From Octopus sinensis (Eukaryota), in NCBI RefSeq assembly GCF_006345805.1, contig NC_043022.1:9920001-9984000 (forward strand): DNA of 64,000 bases, in the 5' to 3' direction. A program made the translations under genes and the position numbers. The notes beneath the pieces were generated by a model, which was given only the letters and a program-made list of their open reading frames with translations, had not been told where the DNA came from and made no database searches. Shown piece by piece: positions 32,921 to 64,000 of the stretch; position 1 is the first letter of the stretch, and every line of letters starts with the position of its first letter.

Positions 32921-34458
32921 TGTTTACACCTGCGTTAACTCCATTTTATATATATATATATATATGGCGGTGCCCCAGCATAATGGCGGTGCCCCAGCAT
33001 AATGGCGGTGCCCCAGCATGGCCACATCTCATTAGCTGAAACTGGAAAAATCAAAAATCGAAAAATCATATATATATACTAGCTGAAGTTGACCCGCTCT
33101 ACGTGCGGGTAAGAGTGTGGGTGTTACTTTCTGTTGCTTCCTTTCAGCACGTAAAAAGCACCATCCGAACGTGGCCGATTGCAGCACCGCCTTGACTTGC
33201 TTCTGTGCCGGTGGCACAAAAAATGCACCAACCGATCGTTGCCACTGCGAGCCCCCCTGGCACCAGTGCCGGCGGCACGAAAAAAGCACTCACTACACTC
33301 ACAGAGTGGTTGGCGTTAGGAAGGTCATCCACCTGTAGAAACACTGCCAGATCAGACTGGAGCCTGGTGCAGCCTCCTGGCTTCCGAGACCCCGGTCACA
33401 CTGTCCAACCCGTGCTAGCACGGAAAATGGACGTTAAACGATGATGATGATGATGATGATGATTCTCCGTATTTGTTTCTCTCTCCTTTCTCTCTCACTT
33501 TCCCACTCTCTTACTTTTCTTTTCTCTCGGACTCTCCCTCGCTTTCTCTTACTCTCTATCTTTATCTATCTCTCTCCCATTTATAAACAACAGAAGATCT
33601 TGAGTAAGTTGAGAAATAAAATATTTAGAAAGATCAATCAGAAATATGAGGCAGTGACAATGGAAAGGTCTGCTTCAAGGCAGACAGCAAAACGCTAACA
33701 TTTAAAAGGGACAGACGAACTTGCGAGCTGAAGAAAAATAATAAAATATTGGAAACCAAAGTTTGAAGGGATAGAATCTGAGGATAGTAGAGTCACCATG
33801 GCTGGCATTTGTTAACGACGGACAGCAACGTAGTGACAGTTTAACGGCTGGCGTAAAATTTTGAACTTGATGTAAAAGAAAATTCGTAAACACCAAGTTT
33901 TGAAGTGATTTTTCTCACGACAGTAGACTCACCATGGCAAGCATTCAAAACTTCTTTATCATGGACGGCAACACATTGACAATTAAAAGGCTGGCGCAAA
34001 TTTTTTAGCTTGATGTAACAGAGAATTCCTAAACACCCGCTCCTTGAAATTTTAATCCCCTTCCAGCCCCATTTAGACCCCTTTTCACATTTTGGTTAAT
34101 ATAACCCGATTTCATTCGGGTCTACTGGGGCCACATTTTATAAGATGAGGAATTTTGTCCTAGAGGTGACGCCTTTCATTTGAGGAACAAAATAGTTGTC
34201 ATGCAAACTTGTCAGCACCTTTAACATAGGTGTGCATATTTTCAGCTGAATCGACCGACTACGTAATGCACACATTATATATATATATGTGTATATATAT
34301 ATATATATGTGTGTGTGTGTGCACGCATTATATATACAAATGTATACAAATGAGATATATATCTGTATAAATTAAATTAGAGATAAAACCACTAATAGGC
34401 AAATCAAACAGTGAAAAACCAAAAACAAAAAAAAAGAAAATATAACATGGAAAATATA

Positions 34459-35960: not shown

Positions 35961-36367
35961 TAAATGAACGCAAGAATATCTGATTCATAATATTTGTTCT
36001 CATGCTCGTGTGTTGTTTGTTGGTGACAAACATATACTGAAAAGAACGCCGCCGAAGTGATAGGAAGGTAGGAAACAGAGTCAGTGAAAAAGAAAGGAAA
36101 TAGCGATAGTGACAGATACTTTAAATAACGGTAGTGGACTTCTGAAAGTTATGAAGAGGAGTAAAGGGGGAAAGGAGGAAATAGGGTGAGTGAGGAAGAT
36201 GGCCCCTAGCAACCACACCTTTTAAGATAGGGATTTTTAAGGTAGCCCACGAGCATCGTCACCTCATTCTACATGTCCCTGTAAATTTTGGAGCGAATCG
36301 GACGGGATGTAGTGGCATTGAAAGCGATCCAAGCGGTAAAAACGCATTTCAGTTTTATATATAGAGA

Positions 36368-38226
36368 CTAGCTGAAGGTGACCCGCTCAACGCGCGGGTA
36401 AGAGTGTGGTTGTTACTTTCTGTTGCTTCCTTTCAGCACGTAAAATGCACCATCCGAACGTGGCGGATTGCAGCGCCGCCTTGACTGGCTTCTGTGCTGG
36501 TGGCACGTAAAAAGCACCAACCGATCGTGGCCGCTGCCAGCCCCCCTGGCACCTGTGCAGGCGGCACGAAAAAAGCACCCACTACACTCACAGAGTGGTT
36601 GGCGTTAGGAAGGGCATCCACCTGTCGAAACACTGCCAGATCAGACTGGAGCCTGGTGCAGCCTCCTGGCTTCCCAGACCCCTGTCAAACTGTCCAACCC
36701 GTGCTAGCACGGAAAACGGACGTTAAACGATGATGATGATGATGATGATGATTCTCCCTCTTTGTTTCTTTCTCCTTTCTCTCTCACTTTCCCACTCTCT
36801 TACTCTTCCTTTCTCTCGGACTCTCCCTCGCTTTCTCTTACTCTCTATCTTTATCTATCTCTCTCCCATTTATAAACAACAAAATATCTTGAGTAAGTTG
36901 AGAAATAAAATATTTAGAAAGATCAATCATAAATATCAGGCAGTTACAAACGAAAGGTCTGCTTCAAGACAGACAGCAAAACACTAACATTTAAAAGGGA
37001 CAGACGAACTTGCGAGCTGAATAAAAATAATAAAATATTGGAAACCAAAGTTTGAAGGGATAGAATTTGAGGATAGTAGAGTCACCATGGCTGGCATTTC
37101 TTAACGACGGACAGCAACGTATTGACCGTTCAACGGCTGGCGTAAAATTTTGAACTTGATGTAAAAGAAAATCCCTAAAAACCAAGTTTTGACTTGATTC
37201 TTTCTCACGACAGTAGACTCACGATGGCAAGCATTCAAAACTTCTGCATTATGGACGGCAACACATTGACGATTAAAAGGCTGGAGCAAATTTTTTAGCT
37301 TGATGTAACAGAGAATTGCTAAACACCTGCTCCTTTAAATTTTAATCCCCTTCCAGCCCCATTTATACCCCTTTTCACCTTTTGGTTAATATAACCCGAT
37401 TTCATTTGGGTCTACTGGGGCCACATTTTATAAGATGAGGACTCAACCAAGTTTCCCAAGTTCTGGTCATAGACCATAGAACACTCAACCAAGTTTTCCC
37501 GATTTCTGGTCATAGACCATAGAACAGTCAAGCAAGTTTCCCGAGTTCTGGTCATAGACCATAGAACACTCAACCAAGTTTCCCGAGTTCTGGTCATAGA
37601 CCATAGAACACTAAACCAAGTTTCCCGAGTTCTGGTCATTTGCAGAATAAATAGAGACGGCGGAGGTGGCAGACGTCGTTGCAATGTAAACATGATTTGT
37701 TTTAAGAGAAAGATTGTCCAGATTGTGTGTTGGTGGTGGCGATGATAATTATCTTTATGAATGGAGATAAAGAGAAATTGAAGGGGAGTTAGAGGTAGAA
37801 AGAAAAGGTGTAAATTTTGGAGTGAATCCGACGGGATGTAGTGGGCTTTAACCCCGGCAAAAAAATAATATCTGTTGCGTTTCTGAAAGAGGTGAAGTAG
37901 GAATAGTGAAACTTTTGCGGCTGTCATTGATAGACTCGTTGTAGAATAAATAGAGATGGCGAAAAAAGAGAGAGCTCGAGAAAGAAAAGGTGATATATGA
38001 AAGGGAGGACGGGAAAATGAAATATTTTGCAATGTAAACATGATTTGTTTTAAGAGAAAGATTGTCATGATTGTGTGTTGGTGGTGGCGATGATAATTAT
38101 CATTAGGAAAAAGAGTGAGTGAGTGAGGAAGACATATACATTAGTTGTGGCGATGATAATTCTAGACCCCTTTTCACATTTTGATGAAGAGAACCCGATT
38201 TCATTCGGGTGTACTGGGGCCACATA

Positions 38227-38273
<47 letters not shown>

Positions 38274-38813
38274 ACGCTGTAGAAATTAAATTAGAGATAA
38301 AACCACTAATAGGGAAATGAAACAGTAAAAAACCAAAAACAAAAACATAAAAATAAAAATATATTAGATATATGTATATATATATATGTGTGTGTGTGTG
38401 TTGACAGGTAGACAATAGAATGCGATGGCGATGGGGATGGCGAGTAATATTTGTTACTGTCCATGAACGCTGATAGATACATGAGTAAAATGTATAGGAA
38501 GGTAAGAGATAGAGTGAGTGAAAATGTTCTTGGAAGAGAGTAAATAGCGACAAAGTGATTTGAGGAAGACTTTACATTAAATAACGGTAGTTGCATTGTC
38601 AAATGAAGAGGAGTGACAGAGTACTGGAGGAAATAGGGTGAGGTAGGAAGATGGCCCTAGCAACCACACCTTTTAAGATAGGGATTTCTAAGGTAGCCCA
38701 CGCGCATCGTCACCTCATTCTACATGTCCCTGTAAATTTTGGAGCGAATCGGACGGGATGTAGTGGCATTGAAAGCGAACCAAGCGGTAAAAACGCATTT
38801 CAGTTTTATATAT

Positions 38814-44057: not shown

Positions 44058-47000
44058 TCATCATCATCATCATCATCGTTTAGCGTCCGCTTTCCATGCT
44101 AGCATGGGTTGGACGGTTCAACTGGGGTCTGGGAAGCCAGAAGGCTGCACCAGGCCCAGTTTGATCTGGCAATGTTTCTACGGCTGGATGCCCTTCCTAA
44201 CGCCAACCACTCCGTGAGTGTAGTGGGTGCTTTTTACATGCCACCAGCACAGGTACCAGATGAGTCTGGCAAACGGCCACAATCGGATGGTGCTTTTTAT
44301 GTGCCACCGGCACGGGGGCCAGGCGAGGCTGGCAGCGGCCACAAACGGATGGCGCTTTTTACGTGCCACCAGCACGAGGCCAGTCAGGGCGGGGCTGGCA
44401 ACAGCCACATTCGGATGGTTCTCTTACGTGCCACCGGCACTGGTAACACATCTGCAATTTCCATTGATCGATTTCCATTCTGATCCTCACTTGCCTCAAC
44501 AGGTCTTCACTAGTAGAGTTTTGTCCCCCAAGAAGGGAAGGTATGCATACGTAGGCTGGCTCCGTCCCAAGTAGAAGGCCATGGGTTATGGTTTCACTTG
44601 TCCTGCCGGGTCTTCTCACGCACAGCATACTTCCAGAGGTCTCGGTCTCTAGTCATTTCCTCTGTGAGACCTAAAGTTCGAAGGTCGTGCTTCACCACTT
44701 CGTCCCAGGTTTTCCTGGGTCTGCCTCTTCCACAGGTTCCTTCAACCGCTAGGGTGTGGCACTTTTTCATACAACTATCTTCATCCATTCTCGCCACATG
44801 TCCATACCAGCACAAACGTCTCTCTTGCACACCACATCTGATGCTTCTTAGGTCTAGTTTTTCTCTCAAGGTACTTACACTCTATCGAGTATGAATACTG
44901 ACATTACACATCCATCGGAGCATACTGGCTTCATTTCTTGTGAGCTTATGCATATCCTCAGCAGTCACGGCCCATGTTTCACTGCCCTGTAGCATGGCTG
45001 TTCGTACACATGCATCATACAGTCTGCCTTTTACTCTGAGCAAGAGGCCTTTTGTCACCAGCAGAGGTAAGAGCTCTCTGAACTTTGCCCAAGCTATTCT
45101 TACTCTAGCAGCTACACTTTCAGCACACCCACCCCCGCTGCTGACTTGGTCACCTAGGTAACGGAAGCTATCAACTATTTCTAGTTTTTCTCCCTGGAAA
45201 GTGACAGAAGTTGGTCTCAGAGCATTTTCAGTGTTTATTGTTCTTGAGCATCTGCCACATACAAAAACCATCTTCCTAGTTAGCCTTCCTTTGACATTGC
45301 TGCACCTCTTATGTGTCCATAGCTTACACTTGGTGCATCTTATAGAGTTTCTACCTACACCTTTTCTACAGATCGAGCAGGGCCACCTACCTGAAGGCGT
45401 TTGTGATTTGTCTACCTTCCTACTTATTAGGACTTTGGTTTTAGCTAGATTGACTCTAAGGCCCTTCGATTCTAGACCTTGCTTCCACACCTGAAACTTC
45501 TCCTCGAGTTCTGATAGTGACTCAGAAATTAGAGCAAGGTCATCAGCATAGAGGAGCTCCCAAGGGCATCCTGTCTTGAATTCCTCCGTTATTGCCTGGA
45601 GGACTATTATAAATAGGAGGGGGCTGAGGACTGAGCCTTGGTTGACCCCTACCTCTACCCGGAATTCTTCACTGTACTCATTGCCAACCCTCACCTTACT
45701 AGCAGCGTCCCTGTACATGGCTCGCACTGCTCTCACTAACCATTCATCTATCCCTAGTTTCCTCATTGACCACCAGATAAGGGATCGGGGGACCCTGTCA
45801 AAGGCTTTCTCCATGTCAACAAAAGCCAGGTACAGGGGCTTATCTTTGGCTAGGTATTTCTCCTGCAGCTGCCTTACCAGGAATATAGCATCAGTGGTAC
45901 TTTTCCCTGGCACGAACTCAAACTGCATCTCATCTAAACTAACTCTCTCTCTAATTAGTTGGGCTATGACCCTCTCTGTAACCTTCATTGCCTGATCCAA
46001 CAGCTTGATACCTCTGTAATTATTTGTATCTAGGGCGTCACCTTTACCTTTGTAGCAGTTGACTATTATGCTGCTACACCAGTCATTGGGTATGACTCCT
46101 TCGTGTTTTACCTGATTAACTATACGGGTGACTAGGCTATAGCCGACACTACCAGATATTTTGAGCATCTCTATAGTGATTCCTGATGGGCCAGGGGCTT
46201 TCCCTGTCTTCATGCTTCTAATTGCCTTAACTACCAAGGAACTGTCAACTCAAATAGCTGGTCCCTCTGTTGGGTCAACATTCAGTAGACTCTCTTTATC
46301 CCATTCATTTTCTTTATTCAGCAACCTTTCATAGTGGTGTCTCCAAACCTCTCTCTTTGCATCCTCATTTAGCGCAAGTGAACCATCTTCCATGCGAACA
46401 CACTTCTCTCCTACCACATCACAATTCTCTCTCACACACTGTCTTGCAACGCAAAACACCTCCAGTCTTTGGTCCTCACAGCGCAGAACATTGGCAAATT
46501 TTTTCTTATTTGCTTCCCCTCTGGCTAGATAGACCTGTCTCCTAGCTTACCTTTTGGCAGTCTGATACAATTCCCTGCTACCACCATTCTTCCAGTCCTT
46601 CCAAGTCTGTCTCTTTTCTCTAATAGCCCTGTCTACAACACTGTTCCACCACCACGTTGCCTTGGGACAAGAGGGGACTTTGCACCAGCCACAGATCTGG
46701 TCAGTGGCTCTCAGCAGGTTGTCCCTTAGAAACGTCCAGTTGCCTTCTACCCCATGTGATACTCTATCCCCTTCTACTTCGTCAAAGGCTTCAAGTAGCA
46801 TGTCCCTAAATCTCTGTCCATTCGCAGGATCTTTAAGCTTCCAGATCCTTCTTCTCCATGTTGGTTGTCTTCTGGTTGTCCTCCTAGTCCTGATCCTAAA
46901 GTCACTAACTACCAGTCTATGTTGTGGGGTACATTCTTCGCCTGGGAAGGTTTTGGCATTTATAAGCAGCCATCTCTCCCTTTGCCTAGAAAGGATGTAG

Positions 47001-47722
47001 TCTATTTGGCTGGTATGTTGGCCCGATTGGTAGGTGACTAGGTGGCTGGTAGGTTTCCTGAAGTTAGTGTTGCAAATCATAAGATTATTTGCATTGCAGA
47101 ACTCCAGCAGCCTGGTTCCCTCCTCGTTGCGGGAACCATAGCCATAGCCTCCATGTAAGCCATGGAAGCCCCCAGCATGTCGTCCAACATGACCATTGAA
47201 GTCACCAGCCACAAAGAGAAGGTCTCTGTCGTTCCTCAACGAGGTAGTCTGCAGTAGAGTGTCATAGAATCGGTCTTTCTGTCCATCTGGTAGCCCCGAC
47301 TGAGGAGCATAGGCCGATATAATGGTTGCTAAACTATGATGAAGCACTAATCTAATCTTAAGTATTCTGTCACATACTCTGATTACCTCAATTACTTTAT
47401 CTACCCATTTCTCAGCGATAAGTATACCCACGCCACCAACCCCGTCAGTGTTCCCTGCCCAGAAAATCTTGTACCTGTGTTCCTTGCCTGTGAGGAACCT
47501 AGCAGATCCTCCTCTCCTCCTTACTTCTTGCATGCAGCATATATCCACACATCTCTGTTCAAGCATCTTGACTATCTCGCCAGACCTATCTTTCAGTGTG
47601 CCAACGTTGAGGGTGCCAACCCTGAGGGTGTGGGAGGTATGGGCCCTAGAGACCCTGGGACAGTGGACAGTAGCTTCATGTACCTGAAAAGAAAGCTCGC
47701 ATTTGGCAGAATCCATGTGCAA
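44058..47722 (-). mobile_element. Near-full-length RTE-clade LINE (APE endonuclease + RT), young pseudogenised copy
   Basis: One frame 47722-44594 interrupted only by three in-frame stops (46547, 46250, 44882). APE motifs TLNVGTL, MQEVR, AGDFNGHVG, QIDYIL; RT motifs FVDMEKAFD, QGSVLSPLLF, LYADD; Cys-rich insert; 3' UTR ends in (ATG)n at ~44058. 5' UTR may extend to ~48500. Confidence 0.95.
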
Positions 47723-48689: not shown

Positions 48690-49046
48690 TCCTGTTTAAT
48701 TTTCATCTTCTAGGCTGAAATCTCCACTTTTGAATTTTGCAAACCATCTTCTACAAGGTCTTTCATTCAAGCATTCTTTCCCATAAAGTGAGTGTATATT
48801 TCGAGTCACTTCGGTCGCAGAGTTTCCTTTTTTGTACTCATAAAGCATTATGTGCCTTAAATGCTCTTTTGATACTTTCATGTTAGAAAGGGCTTTAATT
48901 AAAGAAATTTTAATTCTATTATTCTGTAAAATAATTTTTAATTAGTTTAAATGTACAAATGCATAAAAATAATTTTTAATTCCATTAGACATTCTAAAAT
49001 ACTTTTAAATTTCATTCAATTTTAAAAAAGGTAAAATTGGACAGAA
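48690..49046 (-). mobile_element. Mariner 5' remnant (N-terminal HTH)
   Basis: HLRHIMLYEYKKGNSA...RRWFAKFKSGDFSLED; TIR tatcaggtcatcccataagt. Confidence 0.85.
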
Positions 49047-49134
49047 CTTATGGGATGACCTGATATATGTAAACTAATTTGTTATTTGTGCTTACTGTGA
49101 CATTTCAGGTAAAGAATATTGTTACTACGAGAGA

Positions 49135-49302
49135 ATGGTTGAAATATTTCCAACACACGTGAAGGATGTCTACATCTGCCACATTAAGCAGTTCAAAGAC
49201 CATCGTGGAAAGCTCTGTGAATTATTCAACATGGCCAAATATCCAGAAGAAATTAAAAAATTCTTCCCAATTCAACAGATTACTTGCGTGACCAATAGAA
49301 AA
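49135..49302 (+). CDS. rmlC: RmlC-domain exon 1 ([32 protein letters not shown]...TNRK)
   Basis: Matches the RmlC N-terminal F.D.RG...E.FN pattern. Acceptor ttcag ends at 49108, upstream of the ATG; donor gtaag at 49303; phase 0. Confidence 0.88.
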
Positions 49303-49376
49303 GTAAGACACGTTTATACACCCATACACATATATATATATATATGTATATATATATGCACATATATATATATATG

Positions 49377-49420
<44 letters not shown>

Positions 49421-51264
49421 TATATATATATATGCATATATATATATATGTAAATTTTTATCGTTTTACTTGTTTCACCTATTTGGCTGCAACCAGGCTG
49501 GGGCACAGCCTCGAAGAGTTTTAGTCAAACAGGTCGACCCAAGGACTTATTTTTTAAAGTATAGAACTTATTCTTTTGATATCTTTTGCCAAACCAGTGA
49601 GTTACGAGAGCATAAACACACCAGCATTGGTTGTCAGGCAGTGGTGGAGAACAAATACATGCACGCACACATATATATTCAACGGGCTTCTTTTAGTTTC
49701 CGTCTACCAAATGCACTCACAAGGCTTTGATTGGCCCGAGGCTATAGCAGAAGACACTTACCCACGGTGCCACAGAATGGGACTGAACCCAGAACCATGT
49801 GGTTAGGAAGCAGGCTTCTTACCACACAGCCACGCTTACACTCATATATATATGTATATATATATATATATATATACATGCACACACAGGGTTATTCAAA
49901 AAGAATGAACCCATTTCATTACGCAATATTTTAATAAGGAAAAGCAATAGAAAACTCCAGCTAGGTCACAAGTATTTACTCACAATCAACTTTTATTTTC
50001 TGTCTTACAAGTGTTCAATGTGGCCACCACCTGCAGCACAGGCAACATCAATGTGATAAGAGAATCCTTCCCAGATGCATATCAGCATATCATGAACTAC
50101 TGGGTACTTCTTTGGCTGTCTGGTTGAATGCTTTATCAAAGTTTTCCCATTTCCATTCTATGTTAATATCTTCTGGAATCACCTCAAGCAAAGCAAATTT
50201 ATTCTTTAGTTCTATAATGAACTTGCTTTTGATATGCTGATACGGGTCTGGGAGAATTCTTTTATCGCATTGATGCTGTCTGTGCTGCAGGTGGTGGCCA
50301 CATTGAACACTTGTAACACAAGAAATAAAAGTTGATTGTGAGTAAATACTTGTGACCTAGCTGGAGTTTTCTATTGCTTTTCCTTATTAAAATATTGCGT
50401 AATGAAATCGGTTCATTCTTTTTGAATAACCCTGTATATGTGTGTATGTGTGTGTATGTGTGTGTGTGTGTGTGTGTAGAAGGTTGAAAAGAAACACACA
50501 AGTTGATATATATGGAAAAAAAGTCAAGGTAGAAAATGCTAAAATAATTTTATAAAAAGCATTTCGGTACCAGTTTCAGTCATTGAAACTTTTTCAACTG
50601 TAACAATTAAACAATTAAATTTAGAAAAATTAAAAGAAAAGTTTTTTTTAAAGAATATTTGCATAATATTCAAATACAAGGGGCATTTTCCTTGTTTGTG
50701 CCTTTCTCTGTCTCTCTTGTTAACTCTTGTGGGTTTACGACTATTATACCAGCTGCATTCTCCTCTTATGCTCCCCTCTCGTTCTCCCTCTTCCTCTTCG
50801 TCTTCTTCGCACAAGAGTAAGCAAGAGAGACAGAGCCAGGTAGAAACAAGGAAAATGCCCCTTGTATTTGAATATTATGCAAATATTCTTCTAAACAACT
50901 TTTCTTTTAATTTTTCCAAAATTTAATTGTTTTCCATACTTATAGTTGAAAAAGTCTCAATGACTGAAACTGGTACTGAAATGTCTTTTATAAAATTATT
51001 TTAGCATTTTCTCTCTTGGTGGCATGTAAAAAGCACCATCCGATCGTGGCCGTTTGCCAGCCTCGTCTGGCACCTGTGCCGGTGGCACATAAAAAGCACC
51101 CACTACACTCATGGAGTGGTTGGCGTTAGGAAGGGTATCCAGCCATAGAAACATTGCCAGATCAAACTGGGCCTGGTGCAGCCTTCTGGCTTCCCAGACC
51201 CCAGTTGCACCATCCAACCCATGCCAGCATGGAAAGCAGATGCTAAACGATGATGATGATGATG

Positions 51265-51316
<52 letters not shown>

Positions 51317-52565
51317 CAAGGTTATTAACATCACTATGCCGCAGTGAATCCTTCTCATCATCACCATTTAACAGTGATTTTCCATCCTGGCATGGATTGG
51401 ATAAGAGCTGGATCAGACTCCAGTATGTTTTGGCATGGTTTCTATGGTCTAATGTTCTTCCTAATTCCAGCCACTTTAGAGAGTATACTGGGGTGCTTTT
51501 TATATGGTACCAGCATGGGACCTTTAATGGCAAGGGAGCTTTTTACACGGCACCAGCACAGGTGCTGCTGATGTGGGGTGCTACTTATGTGGTGCCAGCA
51601 CGGGTGCATGATACAGGGCACCAGCATGGGTGCTTTTTTTGTGGCATCACCAGTGCCTATGGGGTAGACATGTAACTTACAAGACAAGGAGTTCTCAGTT
51701 GAAAGAGAGAGTGGAACCAAGAAAAGTAACAGTGTGCCAGGCGAGGGGTTGGGTATGATATAGGGGACAGGGATAGCTGTCTTGCTACAGAGGAAATACT
51801 TGGCTACCTGAGTGGGACAAGGAAGGAGAGGGAGGCGGGAAAAGTTTGAGAGAAAGTTAGAGACAGAGAGAGAAAGAGGGAGAGAGAGAAAGAGGGAGAA
51901 GAGAAGGAGGGAAGGGTTTACCTATTTCTTTATTACCCACAAGGGGCTAAACACAGAGGGGACAAACGAGGACAGACATAGGTATTAAGTTGATTACATC
52001 AACTCCAGTGCGTAACTGGTACTTAATTTATTGACCCCGAAAGGATGAAAAGCAAAGCCGACCTCAGCTGAATTTGAACTCAGAACGTAACGACAGACGA
52101 AATACCGCTAAGCATTTTGCCCGGCGTGCTAACGTTTCTGCCAGCTCACTGCCTTTACCTACAGGGAACAGTGACGGTAGTGATGGTAGATATAAGTAGT
52201 ACAAATAGGACAGAGATGTTCCACTGGAATGTGAGGGGAAATATTTAGAGACAAATGGTGAAAGGAACTGGAGTGGCTGATATGAATTTCTTTCTAGTTC
52301 ACTGCATACAACCATGGTTTTAATCGACAAAGCTTTCAATATGAACAGGTTTTCTTTTATTTGTTATAGCTCCTTAAAAAAATTTGGTATAATAGAAGAG
52401 CAATTTAACCCGTTCGTGTTTGTTGGATATAAAGATTATACATTTTACTGGTCCACTTCATACGAATAATAGAATAGCTTCTCCTTTATAATCCCTGTTC
52501 ATGCAGTAAAGGTGTGACATTGATCTACTTGTTTATAGCAAGGTCATTTCAAAGTACAGACACAG

Positions 52566-52632
<67 letters not shown>

Positions 52633-53099
52633 AAATTGAATAAGGGTAGAAATTGATATTAATCAATTAAAACCAGTGGCCTAGCATATTAAAAAAATCC
52701 GAAGATTAAAATATTTTTTACATACAAAATTAAAATTTAAATCTAAATTTTGTATGTAAAAAATATGTGTGTGTGTGTGTGTGTGGAGGCACAATGGCCC
52801 AGTGGTTAGGGCACCTGACTTGCGGTTGTAGGATCGCAGTTTCGATTCCCAGATCAGGCATTGTGAGGGTTTATTGAGCGAAAACACCTAAAGCTCCACA
52901 AGGTTCCGGCAGGGGGCGGTGGCGGTCCCTGCTGTACTCTTTAACCACTCTTTCTCCCACTCTTTCAACTGTTGGCCTGCTCGCTTAGCCAGCGGGGTGG
53001 CGTCATTTGAAGGCTAAAACAATGCAAAGCGCATTGTGACCAGCAATGTGTAGCAACATCTGATAGCCTGGTCGGTCACGGTGGTCGCAGTGATATATA

Positions 53100-53148
<49 letters not shown>

Positions 53149-53330
53149 GTATGTGTATCCAAGGGAAAGACAAAGGGCTGATACAGCTTGGCACCAGTGA
53201 TGTCACAGCTCATTTTTATTAACGCGCGAGTGGCTGAGCACTCCACAGACATGTGTACCCTTAACGTAGTTCTCGGGGAGATTCAGCATAACACAGAGTG
53301 TGACAAGGCTGGCCCTTTGAAATACAAGTG

Positions 53331-53393
<63 letters not shown>

Positions 53394-54901
53394 CTAATTT
53401 AGTTCATTTTCATTGAGGCCCAAAACTGCCCTAAGAATTTTGTCAAGTCTCAAAACTTTCATATCAGATCCAGACTCTGTTTTTGGCTATGTTTTGTGTG
53501 ACAATACTCACTCTGTTCTCTCTCTCTCTCTCTCTCTCTTTCACACACACACACACACACACACACTGAGTATAACAATATTTCTTTGATGATTTTATTT
53601 TCCCAGTTTGCCCATCGTGGACTCCATATAGCTGCTTACTCAAAACTCTTAACCTGCATCAAAGGTTCAGTTTACGATGTGGTTGTTGACACGCGACCAG
53701 ACTCCAGCACTTACCTTCAATGGGTAGGTGTAACTCTGAGTGAAGAGAATGGGTACCAGCTACTCGTACCCCCTGACTGTGGACATGGTTACCTAGCCCT
53801 GGAGGAGGGCTGTGCAGTTGTCTACTGCCAGGTAAGCTTTCTATTTTCTTTGCTAAATTCCTTTATTCATATCATGTTTATACAAACAAGGTGAGCATAC
53901 CAATGAAGTTGTAGATTGTGAGTTCAAATCTGTTGGTGCATATTACTCTTTACATGGGTCTATGCAGAACACTTGGGAAAAGCAGGGATCAAATTATCAG
54001 GAAAGGTTCAGCCTAAGCCCACACTCTATCAATCATCTTGATGTGATTTGCAATTGGATTCCAACTCTTTATCTTCTGAGTTCAAATGCTACCGAAGTCA
54101 ACTTTACTTTCATGTTTTGGGGGTTAATAAATAAAGTACCAGTCAAGTGCTGGGGTCAACATAATTAACTAGCACCTTTCTTCCTAAAATTGCAGACCTC
54201 ATGCCAAAGTTTAAAACCTTTGGTTACTATTGCATCTGGAATATGAAATGATCAACTGGACAAGCTTACTGGTATGGGTAGCCAAGACAAAGCTCTGTTA
54301 ATATACATAAAATTATTAGTGTCATCAAATATAAACCTCACTGAATGTGGAAGGCTGTTTCTATTGATAATGTGTATTAGACAATTCACTGTTTCTCACA
54401 AATCTCACACACACAAGCATATTATATATAGTATATGTATAGTACCCATGTGTAGTGTATACTATGTATATATACAAATTGAGATAGGGGTTGCAAATTC
54501 AACCCTCCATGGGATAACATATATCCAATATACTGCTAGTGAAGTACCCAACAAAGTTAATCCATAAATGTTAAGAATTGCGATGCAATTAATTCATTTA
54601 CTGTATTACATGGGCAAAGGTAAAATTATTTTTACCATAAATTAATAATACAAAATCAGAAAATGGAGAAATACATCTAAATCATTAATCAACTACCAGA
54701 TAATACCCAATCACATATTATATTTATTTATTTATATCCTCTTATAATGATTGTACCTATTGTATTGTATTACTCATTCATGTACGCTGTTTTGTTTAAC
54801 CTTAATGTTCTTATGTAGTGGTTCAATAAAGTATGTGATTGGGTATTATCTGGTAGTTGATTAATGATTTAGATGTATTTCTCCATTTTCTGATTTTGTA
54901 C

Positions 54902-54990
<89 letters not shown>

Positions 54991-56148
54991 CATATGGAAG
55001 TGTTTAATTACCCTGTGAGAGAATTTTTGGTCTTTTTTTTTTTTGTCTTTGTCAGTAAATGTTATTTTTTATTTGCCTCAATCTAGAAATCAAAGGAAAT
55101 CACCACTGTTTCCTTCAAACTTTGCTTTTGTGACCTGGATATCAATGTTTTGAAACTGACCTATTTTCCATTACATTTCAATATCACAGATTTGCTTGTC
55201 AGTTGCTTGAGTGAGTTGCTTAGTGGCTGACAATATGAGGGGAAGCTGAAAAGTTCTTGGCTTTAAGGGTATTGTGAAAGGCCTGGTTGAAGGCCCAAAC
55301 TTTCAAGTTTTTTTACTGGGCTTAGAAAAACTGAAGGACCACTATAATAAGTGTGTGAATCTGAGCATGTTGCTCTGGCCCCAATCTCACTCATATGGTA
55401 CTCCTAGCGCTCCACTAGCATGGATGCCAGTCATTGAACTTGATTTCAATTTTGATTTGTATTATTATTTTTTTTCTCTTCTACTTATTGCAATCACTAG
55501 ACTGCAGCCATACTTGAAAATTTTTTAGTCAAATAAATCAACCTCAGTTCTTATTTTTTGCTCTTTCTTTAAGCCAATTTTTTCACCTGTTTCCAAGTAA
55601 GGTAATATTTCCCCATGACCAGACATGTTTTCATGGAAGATTGGAAATGAAGGGAGCTGCTTGTATCATTATGGTGACATGTTTACACCAATCGTGTGAT
55701 GTTAAGACAAGTAGATGATTACACACACCCACACACATGCACACATGCACATATATTTTTCTTTGTTTTTACTGTCATTTGTTTTTACTGGAGCCATGAT
55801 GGGGCACCGCCTTAAGAAATTTTACTCAAATAAATCAATCCCAGTACCTTTTTTTGCTTGATTTTATTTTAAAGCCAGGTACTTCATCTATTGGTCTATT
55901 CTACCAAACAGCAAAATTACGTGGAAGTAAACCCACCAACACCGGTTGTCAGACAGTGCTGGAGGGCAAACACTGATACAAAGACACACACACTCACACA
56001 TATACACAGTTTCCAAATCCACTCACAAGGTTTTGATTGTCCCAAGGCTGTAGTATAAAAAACACTTGTTTGTGTGCCACAGTGTGACTGAACCTGAAAC
56101 CATATGGTTGGGAAGCAAGTTTCTTACCGTATAGCCACACCTGCACCC

Positions 56149-56188
<40 letters not shown>

Positions 56189-56485
56189 GTATATATATAC
56201 ACATATACAGTGGGCTTCTTTCAGTTTCCGTCTACCAAATCCATTCACAAGGCTTTTACTGGCCCAAGGCTACAGTGAAAGACATTTGCCCAAGGTGCCA
56301 CACAATGAGACTGAACTCTGAACCATGTGGTTGGGAAGCAAGCTTCTTACCACACATGTATACATACGTACATACAGACATATATACATACATACATACA
56401 TACATACATACATACATACATACATACATACATACGTACATACAGACATATATAAATACATACATATATACATACATACATATAT

Positions 56486-56519
<34 letters not shown>

Positions 56520-56588
56520 GTACGTACGTACGTACATACATACATACATACATACATACATACATACATACATACATACATACATACA

Positions 56589-56619
<31 letters not shown>

Positions 56620-58941
56620 TTGACAGGCTTCTTTTAGTTTCTAACAAATCTGCTCACAAGGCTTTTGTCAAATCTGTAATATTTTTTTTATATTTTCAAT
56701 CTTTTCTTTATGCTTTTATTTAATTTTTTTTTTATATATATTTATTTTAAAAGTGATAAAGAAACGAAATCTCCAGAACTAAATTCTTAAATTCTTTTTA
56801 TGTTTCTTGGATATTTTTTTTCTAGGGTGGATGTTTTCTGCCATCTGTTCCTGAAAAAGCTGTCCATTTGTTTGATAAAGCTGTATCAATTGATTGGCCT
56901 TTTATTGATCAGAAAAGCAATTTTCTGATATCAGAAAAGGATTCAAAAGTGCCCTTCTTAGAGGTGGATATTGAAAAATTTAAACCCAATCGCAAAAGAA
57001 TTCTAATTATTTCTTCAAAAGGTCAAGGTGAGTGATTTTCTTTCAAGCTGAATGGTGAGGTGGAGATACTCTTTAAAGGTCCAGGTGGGAAATTCTCTTC
57101 AATGGTCAAGGTGGGGAGATGACTATTTTTAAAGGTCAGTAGCAAGGAGGACAATTTTTTTTTACCCTTCAAATATGAAATTAAAGGGGTCGTGAGTTGA
57201 TGGATTAGATGAATTGATAGGGACCAATGAGCCAGTGATTTTCTTCAAAGGTCAAGAGTGGGGGAGGTGACTATCATTAAAGATCAGTGGTAGGGAGGGT
57301 GATTCTCTTTTCTCCTTTAACTGTGAAATTAAAGGGGTCATGAGTTGATGGGTTTAGAAGGAGAGTGGTAGATGGATAAAGATGGCTAGAGGTGAGGGCC
57401 AGTGAATGGTGGATACAGGTGGAGTCATGCTCCATGGTGAACTACCAGAGGCTTTTTGGGGGGTGGGGATGAGAAGGTGGAGGCAGTAAGAGGCAGTATA
57501 GATGATGTGAAGTGTGGGTAGTATGCGAGAGATGCTCAGTGATGTCAGAAGTACATGGGGGTGGAAACAGTAGGAGACAAACAGAAGTAATGGGGAGCTG
57601 TGATTAGCAAAATGTGAGGGTGTTCAGGGAAAAAAGTGGAGGTTAAAGGGCCATTCAGGGAAACATAAAGTGGTAAGGAATTACACTTAAAATATATTTG
57701 ATACTTAACTGGCTCTCTGTCAGTTATAACAACAAGGTTTCCAGTTGATCCGATTAACAGAACAACCCACTTATTAAGTTAACATGCAGGTGGCTGAGCA
57801 CTTCATGGATACCTGTACCCTTAATGTAGTTCTCAGGGAGATTCAGAGTGACACAAGATGTAACAAGGCTGGCTCCTTTGAATCACAGGTGCAACTCATT
57901 TTTATCAGTTGAATGGACTGGAGCAATATGATATAAAGTACCTTGCTTAAGGGCACAACATGCTGCCAGGGATTGAACTCAAGACCTTATGATCATGAGC
58001 TGAATACCGTAATCCCTAAGCCATGTCCCTTCACTATATTTGGTAATAGCTTAAAAGCCACACTCCATGTGACCTCTTAAGCTAGCTCCTACAGAGGGTT
58101 AATTGGACCCGCTGCCCAAAACTAAAGACAGCTAAAAAGCATGATTATAACACGTCTATGATGAGTATATGCCCCGGTGGTGTTTGATCAGAGGTTAAGG
58201 ACAGATGAGAATTAATTCTGTAATGCAATCATTCTATTGTCCCAATCCCAAGTTGAGTTCAAACCATTGGCCAATTTGTCCAAAAGTCCTCATCTCAATG
58301 TAAAATTAACAAAGGGAATGTCATTTATCTCCCCCTTGATTTCTGATGTCATCTGACAAATGCCAACCAAGAAGGCATGAATCAGCTAAACTTTCCCTGC
58401 TAGAAATAGCAGCACAAATGCTTTTAAATCAAATCCCTATACTGGATAGTCAAGAACCAAACGAAGGGAAAATTTTCTATCCTGGGATCCTCCTGACTCC
58501 AAAAAGGTATATGTCTATGTAGAGCCAATGTAGGCTGAGATACAAGGGTCCCAGATATTTGTAATGCTCTCTACACCATTTTTCTCTTTATTTCCAGTTG
58601 GAAGTACATTCTACAGGCTGCTAAAAGAATGCAATGACAAATATGTAGTTATTGGCACTTGCCACACAGATAATGATCCTCAACATTACAAATTTGATTT
58701 GGAAATTGCTGGAAAGTAGGTTTTAGTTACTCTTTTTTTTTTTATTCTTTTACTTGTTTTCAGTCATTTGACTGTGGCCATGCTGGAGCACTGCCTTTAG
58801 TCAAGCAAATCGACCCCAGGACTTATTCTTTGTAAGCCTAGTACTTATTCTATAGGTCTCTTTTGCCGAACTGCTAAGTTACGGGGACGTAAACACACCA
58901 GCGTCGGTTGTCAAGCGATGTTGGGGGGACAAACACAGACA

Positions 58942-58982
<41 letters not shown>

Positions 58983-60925
58983 GATGGGCTTCTTTCAGTT
59001 TCTGTCTACCAAATCCCACTCACAAGGCTTTGGTTGGCCTGAGGCTATAGTAGAAGACACTTGCCCAAGGTGCCATGCAGTGGGACTGAACCCAGAACCA
59101 TGTGGTTGGTAAGCAAGCTACTTACTACACAGCCACTCCTGTATTGTTTTTTTTTTCTAAATTTTTCTATGATATTTTGGAATTCTATTTGTATGATGTA
59201 TACTATTACACCATTAGAAAATATATCCTTGCACAGTCAGACGCAGTACTGCCATTATGTCTCCATTACACACAATATGAGGGGTCGCTACAAAGTTTCT
59301 GGCTTTAAGGGTATTGCAAAAGGCCTGGTTGGAAGCTCAACCTTCCAAGTTCTTTTACATGGCTTAAAGAAACTGAGAGTTATATAGTGGGCACCTTTTA
59401 ATATCGCTGAAAGGTTCCCTGTCTACAAATCATCACTGGGCTTATGGAAAGAGATTATCCTAATCCAGCTGCCTGTTTGTGTGTCTGTGTTTGTCTCCCC
59501 AACATCGCTTGACAACCAATGTGGTTGGTAAGCAAGCTACTTACCACACAGCCACTCCTGTGCCTATATACATATATAATCACACACACACTTGGATATA
59601 CATAATGTGTGTATACATGTGTGTTTGTGTATGTGTGTGCCTTTTATGTGACATCGAAACAGGGGCTTTTATGTGCCACCAGCATATGCTTCTTTTACGT
59701 GCCACCAGCATTAGCCATGGCTACAATTTCACTTGGCTTGACATGCCTTCACAAGCACAGTAACTCACCAAAGGTCTCTATTACTTGTCATTGCCTAATT
59801 GCTATAGCTATAGATATGATTGTGTGGTTTTGTGATGTAGTGTTTGGTCCACAATAGACCTAAGCTGACCAATGTTTTATCAACAACTTGCTCAATAGAA
59901 CTTGTAAAATTCTCATTCTGTGTATGTATGCTTTTCATGTATGTATGTATGTGTGTTTGTGTCTATACATATATGTGTGTATGTATATGTACACACACAC
60001 AGAAATATACGTATACTCTTTTACTCTTTTACTTGTTTCAGGCATTTGACTGTGGCCATGCTGGAGCACCGCCTTTAGTCGAACAAATCAAACCCAGGAC
60101 TTATTCTTTGGAAGCCTAGTACTTATTCTATCGGTCTCTTTTGATGAACTGCTAAGTTACAGGGACATAAACACACTAGCATTGGTTGTCAAGCGATGTT
60201 GGGGGGATAAACACAGACACACAAACATATACACACACATACATATATATATAAATACATACATACGACAGGCTATTTCAGTTTCTGTCTATCAAATCCA
60301 TAAGGCTTTGGTTGGCCCGAGGCTATAGTAGTAGACACTAGCCCAAGGTGCCATGCAGTGGGACAGAACCTGGAACCATGTGGTTGGTAAGCAAGCTACT
60401 TACCACACAGCCACTCCTGCGCCTATATACACATATAATCACACACACACTTGGATATACATAATGTGTGTGTGTGCATACATGTGTGTTTGTGTATGTG
60501 TGTGCAAATGTACATGTGTGTGCGTGTGTGTGTGCGTGTGCCTGTGTGTGTGTGCATGTGTGTGTTTGTGTGTGTGCATGTATATGTACATGCTTGTGTG
60601 TGTGTGTGTGTGTGTGTGCTCATATGTCCCTCTGAGTCTCTGTGTGAATGTTTTACATTCTGCTCTGAGCTGATCTCTGATGGTGAATTTTTGTTGAAAG
60701 GTTCCCTGTCTACAAATCATCACTGGGCTTATGGAAAGAGATTATCCTAATCCAGCTGCCTGTTGTATTGCGAATAACAACAGTGTAATGCACTAATCTC
60801 TGTTCTGTTTTTATTACAGGGACCCAGCATATGTGAACCTGCTTTTGGATGCCTGCAAACCCCATGTGGTCATTGTATGTGGGGCCATGGTCAATGCAAA
60901 CTTGTGTGAATCACAAACAGAATTG
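49135..60925 (+). CDS. Spliced gene, 3'-incomplete: RmlC-like NDP-4-keto-6-deoxyglucose 3,5-epimerase fused to RmlD-like 4-reductase
   Basis: Exons 49135-49302, 53607-53831, 56826-57027, 58598-58715 and 60820-60925 have GT-AG boundaries and matching phases (0,0,1,2). The joined protein has RmlC motifs [50 protein letters not shown], followed by RmlD-like [28 protein letters not shown]...CES. Confidence 0.9.
49887..50434. mobile_element. Tc1/mariner-type MITE with ~200-bp TIRs in intron 1 of the RmlC-RmlD gene
   Basis: CAGGGTTATTCAAAAAGAATGAA...TTCATTCTTTTTGAATAACCCTG followed by TA. Confidence 0.85.
53607..53831 (+). CDS. rmlC: RmlC-domain exon 2 (catalytic cupin core)
   Basis: [75 protein letters not shown]; tcccag acceptor, gtaagc donor, 225 nt, phase 0/0. 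Confidence 0.93.
56826..57027 (+). CDS. Exon spanning the RmlC C-terminus, a linker and the first RmlD beta-strand
   Basis: [67 protein letters not shown]; acceptor ttctag, donor gtgagt, ends in phase 1. Confidence 0.88.
58598..58715 (+). CDS. rmlD: RmlD-domain exon ([39 protein letters not shown])
   Basis: Polypyrimidine tract plus ccag acceptor, gtaggt donor; phase 1 in, phase 2 out; continues the Rossmann fold (GQVG, helix, VIGT, FDL). Confidence 0.82.
60820..60925 (+). CDS. rmlD: RmlD-domain exon ([36 protein letters not shown])
   Basis: ctaat branch-like site, tacag acceptor, gtttgt donor; resembles the RmlD/SDR segment D...V..ll...kPDvVin.aA...vd.cEs.pel. Confidence 0.82.
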
Positions 60926-61026
60926 GTTTGTTGCACTTTAATTCATTGTTGCTTAGTTAGTGTTGATGTTGTTGTTGTTATTGAAATAGTTATCTTCGTC
61001 TTTGTGTGTGAGTAGGTGTGTGTGCA

Positions 61027-61062
<36 letters not shown>

Positions 61063-61228
61063 GCGTTAGGAAGGGCATCCAGCTGTAGAAGCACTGCCAG
61101 ATCAAACTGGAGCCTGGTACAGCCTCCTGGCTTTCCAGACCCCAGTCGAACCGTCCAACCCATGCTAGCATGGAAAACGATGATGATGATGATGTTTATA
61201 TATATGTATATATCTATCTATCTATCTA

Positions 61229-61266
<38 letters not shown>

Positions 61267-61802
61267 TATATATATATATATATATGCATATATATATATA
61301 TATATATATGCATATATATATATATGAAAAAACAAGTCAGGATAGAAAATGCTAAAATAATTTTATAAAGAACATGCCAGTCATTGAGACTTTTTCAGCT
61401 GTAACAATTAAATAATTGTTAAAATGGTAGAGGAGTAGGGGCCAAAACCGGACGTGGTTCCTCCTGATGATATCTTGAGCTAACTGGATCCTATAAAGGA
61501 GCTGCTATGGTAGCAGACCACGAAAAACGGTTGTAATTCCCCTATATATATATGTATAGGTGCAAGCATGGCTGTGTGGTAAGAAGCTTGCTTCCCAACC
61601 ACATTGTTCAGAGTTCAATCCCACTGTGCAACACTTTAGGCAAGTGTCTTCTACTATAGACTCAGACTGACCAAAGCCTTGTGAGTGGATCTGGTAGGCG
61701 GAAACTGAAAGAAGCCCCTCATATGTATGAATGAATATGAATGAATTTGTTGAACTCTGTTAAATAATTTAAATCATATACTTAATATATATATATATAT
61801 AT

Positions 61803-61868
<66 letters not shown>

Positions 61869-61973
61869 CAAGTAGAAAGATATATTTTTCCAACACATCA
61901 ATACTGAATAGTATATATAAAGGATAAGATCCTTTTAAGAGCAGAAAAATTTGCCAGCAACCAGCCATGACGT

Positions 61974-62023
<50 letters not shown>

Positions 62024-62519
62024 TGTATAAGTTCAGTAAAAATTTAGATTCAGTTGAATATGGTACTTAAGTTAAAGGCACCAGAATTTGGTATGGTATT
62101 ATCCATATAAATCAAAATGGGGTGATTATAATAAAAATAAGCAACAAGGATATCCAGAGGTAATGCAATACGATCGTTTCATGCGACACACACACAAGCA
62201 TGTTCACTTTCCAGACATTTCTACATTACTGCATGTACTTTATATGCACTTTCTGACAAGTTGTGGTGCACCTGAGCACTGTATACAATAATTTCATTAT
62301 TATTTTCATTTAATTAAACAATGCAAATATTACACCAGTTTTAAAATGTAGAGCAATCTTCAGCTGCGTATGGAATTTTTTAGTTAAATTGAAAAGATTC
62401 ATTTTTATACTTATTCCATTTACCAACATTACAAAGAGGGTAAGTAGGTAGACAGAGAGACCAGTCTCATCAACAGAAACATGGTAGTAAATGATCTTTT
62501 TTCATGGATACACTACTTA

Positions 62520-63025
62520 TTCAAAAGAATACCCTCCATCAGGCATTTGCCATATTCTGAATGCCTTACTTCCCTGGGCATGGACACATTGAAACTCTGA
62601 CATCTGGCAGCTGACTTGACAGACACCCATAAAATTATTAACCATCTTACAAACAATAACTCTGAGCACCTTTTCAAACTCCACCCGTCTAACACCCGTG
62701 GACATATTTACAAAGTCAGAAAACAGTACAGCTCCCATGACTTTCAGAAACATTTTTTCATGCTGAGAGTTGCTGAAGCATGGAACAAACTGCCGGCATC
62801 AGTTGTTAGTTGTCAGAGCACTGCATCCTTCAAAACTTCCATGCTTTCTGAGATTCGCCAACACTACACCTGATTTTCTCCTCTCCATACACACACAAGC
62901 ATGTATCTGACTCATACATTGTTCACTTTCCAGACATTTGTATATTACTGCATATACTCTATACGCACTTTCTGACAAGTTGTGGTGCACCTGAGCACTG
63001 TATACAATAATTTCATTATTATTAT
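62520..63025 (+). mobile_element. CR1/L2-type LINE 3' end; related pieces at 21985-22110 (-), 24885-25100 (+), 18520-18720 (-)
   Basis: NTRGHIYKV...FFMLRVAEAWNKLPASVV...SFK; tail duplicated at 62200-62305. Confidence 0.75.
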
Positions 63026-64000
63026 CACTGAATTTACTTTGTTATTTAGATTTACTATTTCATCTTGGTTACCTCCCTTCCATTATATTTTTAAATATTT
63101 TAAAGGTTTTTTTTTATATGTGTGCTAATTAATACCTTATTTACTGGGAATATTCTCATAAAAAGTTCTTCTAAATCCCCTTAATTAATATTCAAAACCT
63201 GATAATGAATAGATAATAATATCCATGTTATTTAGTCTCTAGTTTTATAATGGTCTTATTAGTAATAAAAATTTTAACAAATAGTTTGATCATTTCTTCA
63301 CCCAATATTAAACACTAATCTTGCATGACAACTCCCATGATAAATAAATATTAATTTTAGTCTAGTAATTATAAAATTATAATGTAATTATTAAGTGTTT
63401 TCTTATAGCAGCTTACCTTGCCTATTATAAATAAGCTAGGTATATCCTATAATAAGTTTTAGAATGCAAATCTAGTCTACCCCTTATCTACTATATTCTA
63501 AAATAATTTCATTTTTCAATTTACTGATTTAAATTTCCTTCAATAAAATTTTAAACCATTTTATCTTACTCATTTACCCACTATATCATTTTGCTGATAA
63601 TACATTTCTATTAGATTCATACTTAACCTATACAGAATGATACTGTTATAATTCACTATCTATTTTATAGCACAAGTAAATACATTCTAAAGTCATTAAC
63701 ATGCAGAAAATAAATGAAACCAATGTTTCTTTGAATGTAACCATCCTATTTATGAGGTTAATATATCCTCTAAGCAACTACATACATATATATATCATCA
63801 TCATCGTTTAATGTCCGTTCTCCGTGCTAGCATGGGTTGGACGGTTTGACTGGGGATCTGGGAAGCCAGAAGGCTGCACCAGGCCCAGTCTGATCTGGCA
63901 GTGTTTCTACAGCTGGATGCCCTTCCTAACGCCAACCACTCCGTGAGTGTAGTGGGTGCTTTTTACGTGCCAGACGAGGCTGGCAAACGGCCACAATCAG

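Follow-up and report, generated by a model that had tools for sequence, protein, structure and literature searches.

An RmlC-RmlD fusion gene with bilaterian-age introns in Octopus sinensis, predicted to encode an NDP-6-deoxy-L-hexose epimerase/reductase

Introduction

The RmlC/D fusion protein of the alga Prymnesium parvum turns uridine diphosphate (UDP)- and thymidine diphosphate (TDP)-4-keto-6-deoxyglucose into L-rhamnose nucleotides (Wagstaff et al. 2019, PMC6556577). Here we describe an RmlC-RmlD (RmlCD) fusion gene in a 64,000-nucleotide stretch of the Octopus sinensis genome (contig NC_043022.1, positions 9,920,001 to 9,984,000, forward strand). We refer to this whole stretch as the window and number positions from its first base. 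We find that the gene probably encodes a 507-residue bifunctional enzyme of the eukaryotic RmlCD family that makes a nucleoside diphosphate (NDP)-6-deoxy-L-hexose, most probably UDP-L-rhamnose. The gene is not a recent bacterial acquisition.

The P. parvum protein (CAMPEP_0191228776) has the same RmlC-then-RmlD order in one polypeptide of ~500 residues, with the catalytic residues of both halves kept. Octopus residues 46-504 are homologous to it (tblastn E 6e-45). Identity is ~35%, against 47-50% for the proteins of the annelid Owenia and of amphioxus; these are rough values from ungapped in-frame blocks, because the P. parvum sequence came from the paper's supplement and was frameshifted and damaged by optical character recognition. 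Unlike P. parvum RmlCD, the octopus gene has 10 introns, an insertion of ~14 residues after STNYIF, and a serine for the first glycine of the cofactor motif. A haptophyte-type relative (P0030) fell in the same loose cluster of eukaryotic fusions as the octopus protein in both neighbor-joining (NJ) domain trees, with low bootstrap.

Bacterial RmlC and RmlD (Salmonella 1dzr and 1kbz, Clostridium 1vl0) share folds, catalytic residues, and Pfam families with the octopus protein but are separate proteins, and the octopus identity to them is 30-38% for RmlC and ~25% for RmlD. In many bacteria rmlC is directly followed by rmlD, and true prokaryotic fusions were reported in 69 of 21,964 genomes (bioRxiv 10.1101/854612). 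The fusions that we aligned lack four residues after the catalytic histidine (HIA----AYSKL compared with HFQrgenAQGKL in bacteria).

Animals are regarded as unable to make L-rhamnose. An animal pathway has been described in Caenorhabditis elegans, where the RmlC-type epimerase RML-3 is followed by a separate reductase step through RML-4/RML-5 (PMC9741107, PMC10473587). A 2023 study described rhamnose synthesis by nematodes as occurring "uniquely among known metazoans" and RmlC homologues as "unique to bacteria and nematodes", and nematode rml-3 has been argued to be a Chlamydiales-like bacterial transfer (PMC10473587). The nematode Rml proteins are separate and belong to a dTDP-glucose pathway, whereas the octopus gene is a eukaryotic RmlCD fusion with introns of bilaterian age.

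Two further groups resemble parts of the octopus protein. MAT2B has an RmlD-like fold like that of the octopus C-terminal half but is a regulatory subunit without a cupin domain, whereas the octopus protein includes an entire RmlC domain. Plant, fungal, and giant-virus NRS/ER (UGER) proteins and the RmlC-NRS/ER fusions of Rhizaria and Andalucia perform the same overall 3,5-epimerization and 4-reduction of UDP-4-keto-6-deoxyglucose; some NRS/ER-type proteins have an RmlC-like domain at the N terminus. Unlike NRS/ER, the reductase half of the octopus protein belongs to the RmlD type, and a presumed NRS/ER clade (P0066, P0075, P0129, P0160, and Andalucia godoyi) was separate in the RmlD-domain tree with 100% bootstrap.

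Gene structure

Two RmlC-RmlD paralogues of O. sinensis stand tail-to-tail, and the window holds the 5' half of one of them, exons 1-5 of 11. We call this gene copy A. Its features in the window are as follows.

49109-49134, + strand: upstream part of the first coding exon, before the ATG; the AG acceptor TTTCAG (followed by G) precedes it; 5' untranslated region (UTR) in the RefSeq model
49135-49302, + strand: coding exon 1 (residues 1-56); ATG start, N-terminal RmlC cupin strands, phase 0 end, donor GTAAGA
53607-53831, + strand: coding exon 2 (residues 57-131); RmlC cupin core with RGLH (His63), SKLL (Lys69), GHG, and VVY (Tyr129); phase 0 end
56826-57027, + strand: coding exon 3 (residues 132-198 plus 1 nt); end of RmlC (Asp170), 12-residue linker, first strand of RmlD and glycine-rich motif; phase 1
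58598-58715, + strand: coding exon 4 (residues 199-237 plus 2 nt of codon 238); finishes the motif, which is split between GQ and VG, and continues the Rossmann fold; phase 2
60820-60925, + strand: coding exon 5 (rest of codon 238 to residue 273); third Rossmann strand, donor GTTTGT, phase 0; last exon within the window
60926-64000, + strand: first 3075 bases of intron 5, covered by three-frame reading and tblastn

All introns in the window are GT...AG, and the exon ends are in phases 0, 0, 1, 2, and 0. The five exons splice into an open reading frame (ORF) of 819 nt (273 codons) with no stop. A sequence-only reading of the window had proposed five phase-compatible GT-AG exons of a cephalopod gene, and both proposals were borne out. 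Over their full length, the 273 residues match the N-terminus (1-273) of XP_036369587.1 (507 residues, O. sinensis) with 100% identity, a protein that RefSeq names "methionine adenosyltransferase 2 subunit beta-like". No base of the window differs from CM016884.1 (GCA_006345805.1) across 24,866 compared bases. In the O. vulgaris model, the stretch 49109-49134 is read as in-frame coding sequence (GKEYCYYER).

Exact spliced mapping of the protein onto CM016884.1 gave 11 coding exons for the full gene. Exons 6-11, which encode residues 274-507 with the catalytic motifs STNY and YGKSK, are located 3' of the window, and exon 6 would start at window coordinate 64722. The window therefore covers the epimerase half in full but stops ~85 residues into the RmlD domain. 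The sequence-only reading had the five exons right and overlooked both the run of the gene past the 3' end of the window and the tail-to-tail paralogue.

When five full-length fusion homologues were searched against the 64-kb window with tblastn, the matches were exactly the five exons (exon 2 at 50-67% identity), and no other significant match was found elsewhere in it. Three-frame reading and tblastn with the full-length homologues found no further coding exon in 60926-64000. A gene for TGDS/RmlB, RmlA, or a rhamnosyltransferase was found neither in the window nor at a distance of up to 10 kb from the gene.

Domains and catalytic residues

The window part of the protein matched the Pfam family dTDP_sugar_isom (PF00908) over residues 7-176 (profile 2-166 of 168; E 1.2e-40, 139.4 bits), and the full protein matched it with E 5e-40. 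The motifs RGLH (60-63), SKLL (68-71), GHG (115-117), and VVY (127-129) were all located. The cupin is thus complete and keeps the catalytic His, Lys, and Tyr and the GHG motif, as the sequence-only reading had it. Against RmlD_sub_bind (PF04321), the window part scored 22.2 bits (residues 189-272, profile 2-72 of 287), which is under the cut-off of 27 bits that applies to both families; the full protein scored 162.6 bits (E 1.4e-47), and the run of the cupin into an RmlD-type domain, also proposed from the window, was confirmed. The RmlC match stops at residue 176 and the RmlD match begins at residue 189. The end of RmlC, the linker, and the start of RmlD all lie inside exon 3, and the fusion is therefore independent of splice prediction. 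The fusion is real.

Cuttlefish sequences contain the same arrangement. An orthologue from a cuttlefish cluster (P0186; the cluster includes Sepia pharaonis 'rfbD') is carried by contigs of 1.76-1.86 kb, assembled from sequencing runs, that hold an unbroken 503-codon ORF with short UTR-like flanks. These contigs must be spliced mRNA because the gene has 10 introns.

By sequence, the closest solved structure to the first half is Salmonella RmlC 1dzr (7.5e-24), and the closest to the second half are the RmlD orthologues 2ggs and 1vl0 (~1e-20). His63, Lys69, Tyr129, and Asp170 have their counterparts at the aligned positions of 1dzr. We take His63 and Tyr129 to be the acid-base pair and Lys69 and Asp170 to be their partners, as in the structural literature on RmlC. 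STNYIF (300) and YGKSKLASE (339), encoded outside the window, align with the Thr/Tyr/Lys triad of 2ggs and 1vl0. The catalytic residues of both halves are invariant across 26 aligned fusion proteins. An AlphaFold2 model of the full protein, built on the alignment of these 26 fusions, had a predicted local distance difference test score of 90.6 and a predicted template modeling score of 0.91. We compared it with solved structures in Foldseek, using template modeling scores (TM-scores) normalized to target length. The cupin half matched RmlC 1dzr/1ep0 with 0.85-0.89 (root-mean-square deviation 1.8-2.1 A) and the RmlD half matched 1vl0 with 0.92 (2.3 A).

Relatives and annotation

An exhaustive HMMER search of 1.84 billion representatives ranked fusions of 492-502 residues at the top (53, 47, 42, 37, and 40% identity), well above stand-alone bacterial RmlC. 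The octopus protein is most closely related to eukaryotic fusions of animals, green algae, and haptophytes (33-53% identity); its identity to bacterial proteins is ~30-38%. A first word-indexed search with the 273-residue fragment had returned stand-alone bacterial RmlC at 30-40% identity and no animal or fusion protein. We rejected the picture of "only bacterial RmlC relatives" as a sensitivity artefact, since exhaustive HMMER and a profile search recovered the fusions as well as the octopus protein encoded in the window itself.

The animal members are named in several ways. The Styela clava protein is a "dTDP-4-keto-6-deoxy-D-glucose reductase-like", and those of Branchiostoma belcheri, B. 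floridae, and B. lanceolatum are "uncharacterized", "SpsK-like", or "MAT2B". Other animal members come from Owenia fusiformis, Argonauta hians, Octopus vulgaris, O. bimaculoides, and Sepia pharaonis ("rfbD"). Further members come from the green algae Cymbomonas and Pycnococcus, a Micromonas-labelled MMETSP transcript, and Andalucia godoyi. The family is in this way filed under 'MAT2B', 'SpsK', 'rfbD', or 'uncharacterized'. The MAT2B-type RefSeq name of the octopus protein is a misannotation: MAT2B is defined as having one RmlD-like domain and no cupin, and in the octopus protein a complete RmlC domain comes first.

Gene models with misleading or partial names already exist for O. sinensis, O. 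vulgaris, O. bimaculoides, A. hians, and S. pharaonis. The novelty that the sequence-only reading had left to a search does not hold for cephalopods, where the fusion has public gene models in these five species; its call on the fusion is unaffected. The architecture and chemistry are known from algae, and the gene is no new system. We found no paper on these genes in the literature on rhamnose with cephalopods, molluscs, or amphioxus, and 2026 papers on horizontal gene transfer in amphioxus and tunicates do not cover the gene. As far as can be seen, what is new is the intron evidence for RmlCD of bilaterian age, the octopus duplication with gene conversion, and the change in the octopod cofactor motif.

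Age and origin

We mapped orthologues exactly onto their own genomic loci and compared intron positions. The octopus and Owenia genes have the same 11-exon structure, and each of the 10 introns falls in the same alignment column and phase in both. Their exon lengths (octopus/Owenia) are 168/165, 225/225, 202/193, 118/115, 106/106, 145/148, 125/125, 96/96, 129/129, 110/107, and 97/88. Argonauta has all 10 octopus introns. The gene of the tunicate Styela has 8 introns, 5 of which coincide exactly in position and phase with those of octopus and Owenia, including the phase-1 intron that splits the glycine-rich motif after the junction and the intron after exon 4. By chance, ~0.05 coincidences would be expected, given ~1500 possible positions. 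The introns shared with an annelid (10) and a tunicate (5) therefore place the fused, intron-bearing gene before the protostome/deuterostome split, in the last common ancestor of both groups. Its patchy present distribution reflects losses in many animal lineages.

The NJ domain trees (100 bootstraps) supported the cephalopods (93 and 100) and, for the RmlC half, cephalopods plus annelid (99). Their deep nodes had no usable support and Styela wandered, and the octopus protein clustered with eukaryotic fusions in both trees. Intron positions turned out to be the stronger evidence. They also revise the sequence-only reading of a bacterial-style enzyme, possibly acquired by an old transfer and later supplied with introns: its closest relatives are eukaryotic fusions, and its introns occur also in annelid and tunicate. 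A recent bacterium-to-cephalopod transfer, or intron gain within cephalopods, is excluded. Any transfer would have to precede the bilaterian ancestor, and the gene would have reached the animal stem either through inheritance from older eukaryotes or through a more ancient transfer.

One might have suspected that the assembly is contaminated with bacterial or algal DNA, or that cephalopods recently received the gene from a bacterium, because rml genes are typically bacterial, because nematode rml-3 has a proposed bacterial source (PMC10473587), and because the first search returned only bacterial RmlC. We give this explanation practically no weight. The ten spliceosomal introns are filled with octopus-type microsatellites, fragments of a long interspersed nuclear element (LINE) and of mariner flank the gene, and the gene lies on the 25.5-Mb chromosome-scale record CM016884.1. 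It is syntenic in O. vulgaris, with intron identity of 97-99%. The intron sharing together with this synteny already refutes contamination and recent transfer.

Scans of prokaryotes and viruses agree with these data. A scan of 185,579 prokaryotic genomes gave no true C-D fusion among the extracted bacterial loci. End-to-end bacterial matches ('residues 2-273') that could have passed for fusions were rejected: they are adjacent rmlC and rmlD ORFs or, in one case, an upstream gene in frame with rmlC. The extracted rmlC/rmlD loci served as outgroups. The viral contig scan returned one stand-alone RmlD-like gene and no fusion.

Several other orthologues have their own gene structures. The B. belcheri orthologue has one intron, at a position that the others do not share, and almost all ancestral introns seem to have been lost from the amphioxus gene. 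The Cymbomonas orthologue also has a single, unshared intron, near its 3' end. The A. hians model (L086 20388-20416) has an additional intron, a 29-nt micro-exon, and then a 9.7-kb intron; the additional intron may be real and lineage-specific or a modeling artefact. European Nucleotide Archive contig ctg126252 (356 kb), from a gene-dense and apparently intron-poor eukaryote, carries an intronless RmlCD of 502 residues with VPS13, AIF-1, ataxin-10, and CFAP97-like neighbors; this protein fell near the animal sequences in the NJ trees.

Paralogues and selection

The second RmlCD gene, copy B (XP_036369585/XP_029651548; L001 44657-46262), lies tail-to-tail with copy A, ~8.4 kb beyond its last exon and outside the window. 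Both copies are present in O. vulgaris (L088 and L089), and C-terminal fragments of both occur in O. bimaculoides. In O. vulgaris, the DNA of exons 2 and 6 does not differ between the copies, whereas exons 4, 7, and 11 have synonymous divergence (dS) of 0.35-0.62, exon 4 being the most diverged (0.62). This mosaic of identical and diverged exons indicates gene conversion between the inverted duplicates. The overall ratio of non-synonymous to synonymous divergence (dN/dS) between the O. vulgaris paralogues is 0.43.

Over a longer time span, copy A is under purifying selection: between octopus copy A and Argonauta, pN is 0.23 and pS is 0.72, with omega at most ~0.11. Compared between O. sinensis and O. 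vulgaris, copy A shows 11 non-synonymous and 5 synonymous substitutions (dN/dS 0.59, from 16 substitutions only), and since the split of these species copy A has changed at 10 residues and copy B at 2. Copy A may be under weaker or different selection, as far as such small counts can tell.

The two adjacent copies and the recent dN/dS of copy A could also be read as a decaying duplicate or pseudogene, and the older O. bimaculoides models, which split the gene into "3,5-epimerase" and "SpsK" fragments, as a sign that annotation has joined two genes. We consider this very improbable, and the data already contradict it. The 507-codon ORF is intact in both O. sinensis and O. vulgaris, the domain junction falls within one exon, an annelid has the same 11 exons, the mRNA-like cuttlefish contigs hold the whole fused ORF, and the long-term omega is low.

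Proposed function

The reading of the gene as an epimerase/reductase for NDP-rhamnose or another 6-deoxy-L-hexose, first made from the window, is in our analysis still the best one, and the family includes the proven P. parvum RmlCD (PMC6556577). We infer the enzymatic activity, which nucleotide and sugar are used, and where the substrate comes from. A TGDS-type UDP-glucose 4,6-dehydratase, which is not in the window, would supply UDP-4-keto-6-deoxyglucose. The cupin half would epimerize NDP-4-keto-6-deoxy-D-glucose at C3 and C5 through His63/Tyr129 with Lys69 and Asp170, and the short-chain-dehydrogenase half would then reduce the 4-keto group with NAD(P)H through its Thr/Tyr/Lys triad. The product would most probably be UDP-L-rhamnose, and dTDP-linked substrates may be accepted too, as by the algal enzyme. 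Human and zebrafish TGDS make UDP-4-keto-6-deoxyglucose (PMC12488480, PMC13080230), and TGDS-type dehydratases are listed for amphioxus and an annelid.

Several observations weigh against this function, beginning with the recent changes in copy A described above. The RmlD cofactor motif reads SSKGQVG, in which the first glycine of GxxGxxG is Ser194 (TCT, 57012-57014), and STDY has become STNY. All octopods have both changes and only octopods do; these changes might weaken the reductase half. Ser194 is, at the sequence level, the main reason for doubting a textbook reductase. Both halves also score below the NCBIfam equivalog cut-offs, with 114.6 bits against 155.75 for TIGR01221 (rmlC) and 159 bits against 224.05 for TIGR01214 (rmlD). 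Human TGDS was reported to reside in the endoplasmic reticulum and Golgi (PMC12488480), and no N-terminal extension is evident in the octopus protein, which begins directly with the cupin fold (as judged without a signal-peptide prediction). These two points leave substrate access uncertain. Finally, rhamnose and other 6-deoxy-L-hexoses cannot be distinguished by sequence.

The octopod changes could mean that the gene is a conserved, expressed RmlCD homologue that no longer performs the two-step reaction, being an epimerase only, a MAT2B-like regulatory binder, or, for copy A, a neofunctionalizing duplicate. The faster change of copy A than of copy B would fit such a loss. The RmlD half is as close in fold to the non-catalytic MAT2B (target-normalized TM-score 0.81-0.85) as to some RmlD structures, and RefSeq names the protein after MAT2B. 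RmlCD-like fusions in Trichomonas lack catalytic residues and gave no activity (PMC9741107). We nevertheless regard the loss as unlikely. The octopus protein retains the Thr/Tyr/Lys triad and all RmlC catalytic residues, and it scores better against RmlD (5e-21) than against human MAT2B (5.5e-17). Among the proteins fetched, the first motif position is glycine in 116 of 122 motif matches, and the six exceptions are all from octopods; cuttlefish, squid-like, other animal, algal, and bacterial proteins have glycine. The serine is common to both Octopus copies and Argonauta, between which purifying selection is strong, and the other two glycines of the motif are unchanged. The change is old and conserved and is therefore compatible with whatever function is selected.

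An active enzyme with another product, such as 6-deoxy-L-talose, or with a different nucleotide or a heptose substrate, is in our estimate somewhat less probable still. The sub-threshold equivalog scores would fit it, and the PDB matches of the RmlC fold include GDP-heptose 3-/3,5-epimerases and allose-pathway 3-epimerases. Bacterial RmlD-family reductases with the opposite C4 stereochemistry are known. All six other eukaryotic fusions that were scored likewise fell under the equivalog cut-offs, including the haptophyte type nearest the proven enzyme (205 for TIGR01214) and Cymbomonas (220). The scores thus mark the whole eukaryotic clade as divergent from bacterial Rml, not the octopus protein as aberrant. 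The top PDB matches of both halves are rhamnose-pathway enzymes, and the sole characterized member of the family makes L-rhamnose from UDP- and TDP-linked substrates (PMC6556577).

The gene is a testable lead in animal glycobiology. Cephalopods, an annelid, amphioxus, and a tunicate encode a predicted full epimerase-reductase of the rhamnose pathway, and the shared introns mean that the gene was inherited and is therefore neither contamination nor a late bacterial import. Tentatively, and with somewhat less than even confidence, we suggest that the bilaterian ancestor had a full UDP-L-rhamnose pathway (TGDS-type dehydratase plus RmlCD) and that cephalopods, some annelids, amphioxus, and some tunicates still make rhamnose glycoconjugates. 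Rhamnose production among animals would in that case extend beyond nematodes, and TGDS in vertebrates would be what is left of a pathway that kept its first half and lost its second enzyme. With TGDS activity known in vertebrates (PMC12488480), this leads to the testable prediction that these invertebrates make UDP-L-rhamnose.

Other features of the window

Transposon sequence lies upstream of the gene, and a repeat further 5'.

44882-47722, - strand: non-LTR (long terminal repeat) retrotransposon; reverse transcriptase ORF 44882-46237 (RVT_1, 3e-32) and endonuclease ORF 46547-47722 (Exo_endo_phos, 2e-7)
47162-47243, + strand: candidate upstream exon; ATG, open frame of 27 codons plus one base, GT donor
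48696-48881, - strand: Mos1/mariner transposase helix-turn-helix fragment (HTH_48, E 3.8e-23), ~250 bp upstream of the start codon
15051-17200, 36200-38401, and 33068-34151: ~2.3 kb repeat, an inverted pair (95-96% identical) and a third partial copy

The retrotransposon lies 1.4 kb upstream of the start codon and explains a GC-rich block at 44-48 kb. The candidate upstream exon shares 99.4% identity with the initial coding exon of the 543-residue O. vulgaris model (MEAPSMSS...), and the LINE endonuclease ORF contains it in antisense orientation. In-frame splicing to the acceptor at 49108/49109 would be possible, and the exon is probably either a transposon-derived alternative 5' exon or an annotation artefact. 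The ~2.3 kb repeat carries identical ORFs of 207 and 218 residues, with no Pfam-like features among those checked; an unclassified repeat family or a local segmental duplication is the probable explanation.

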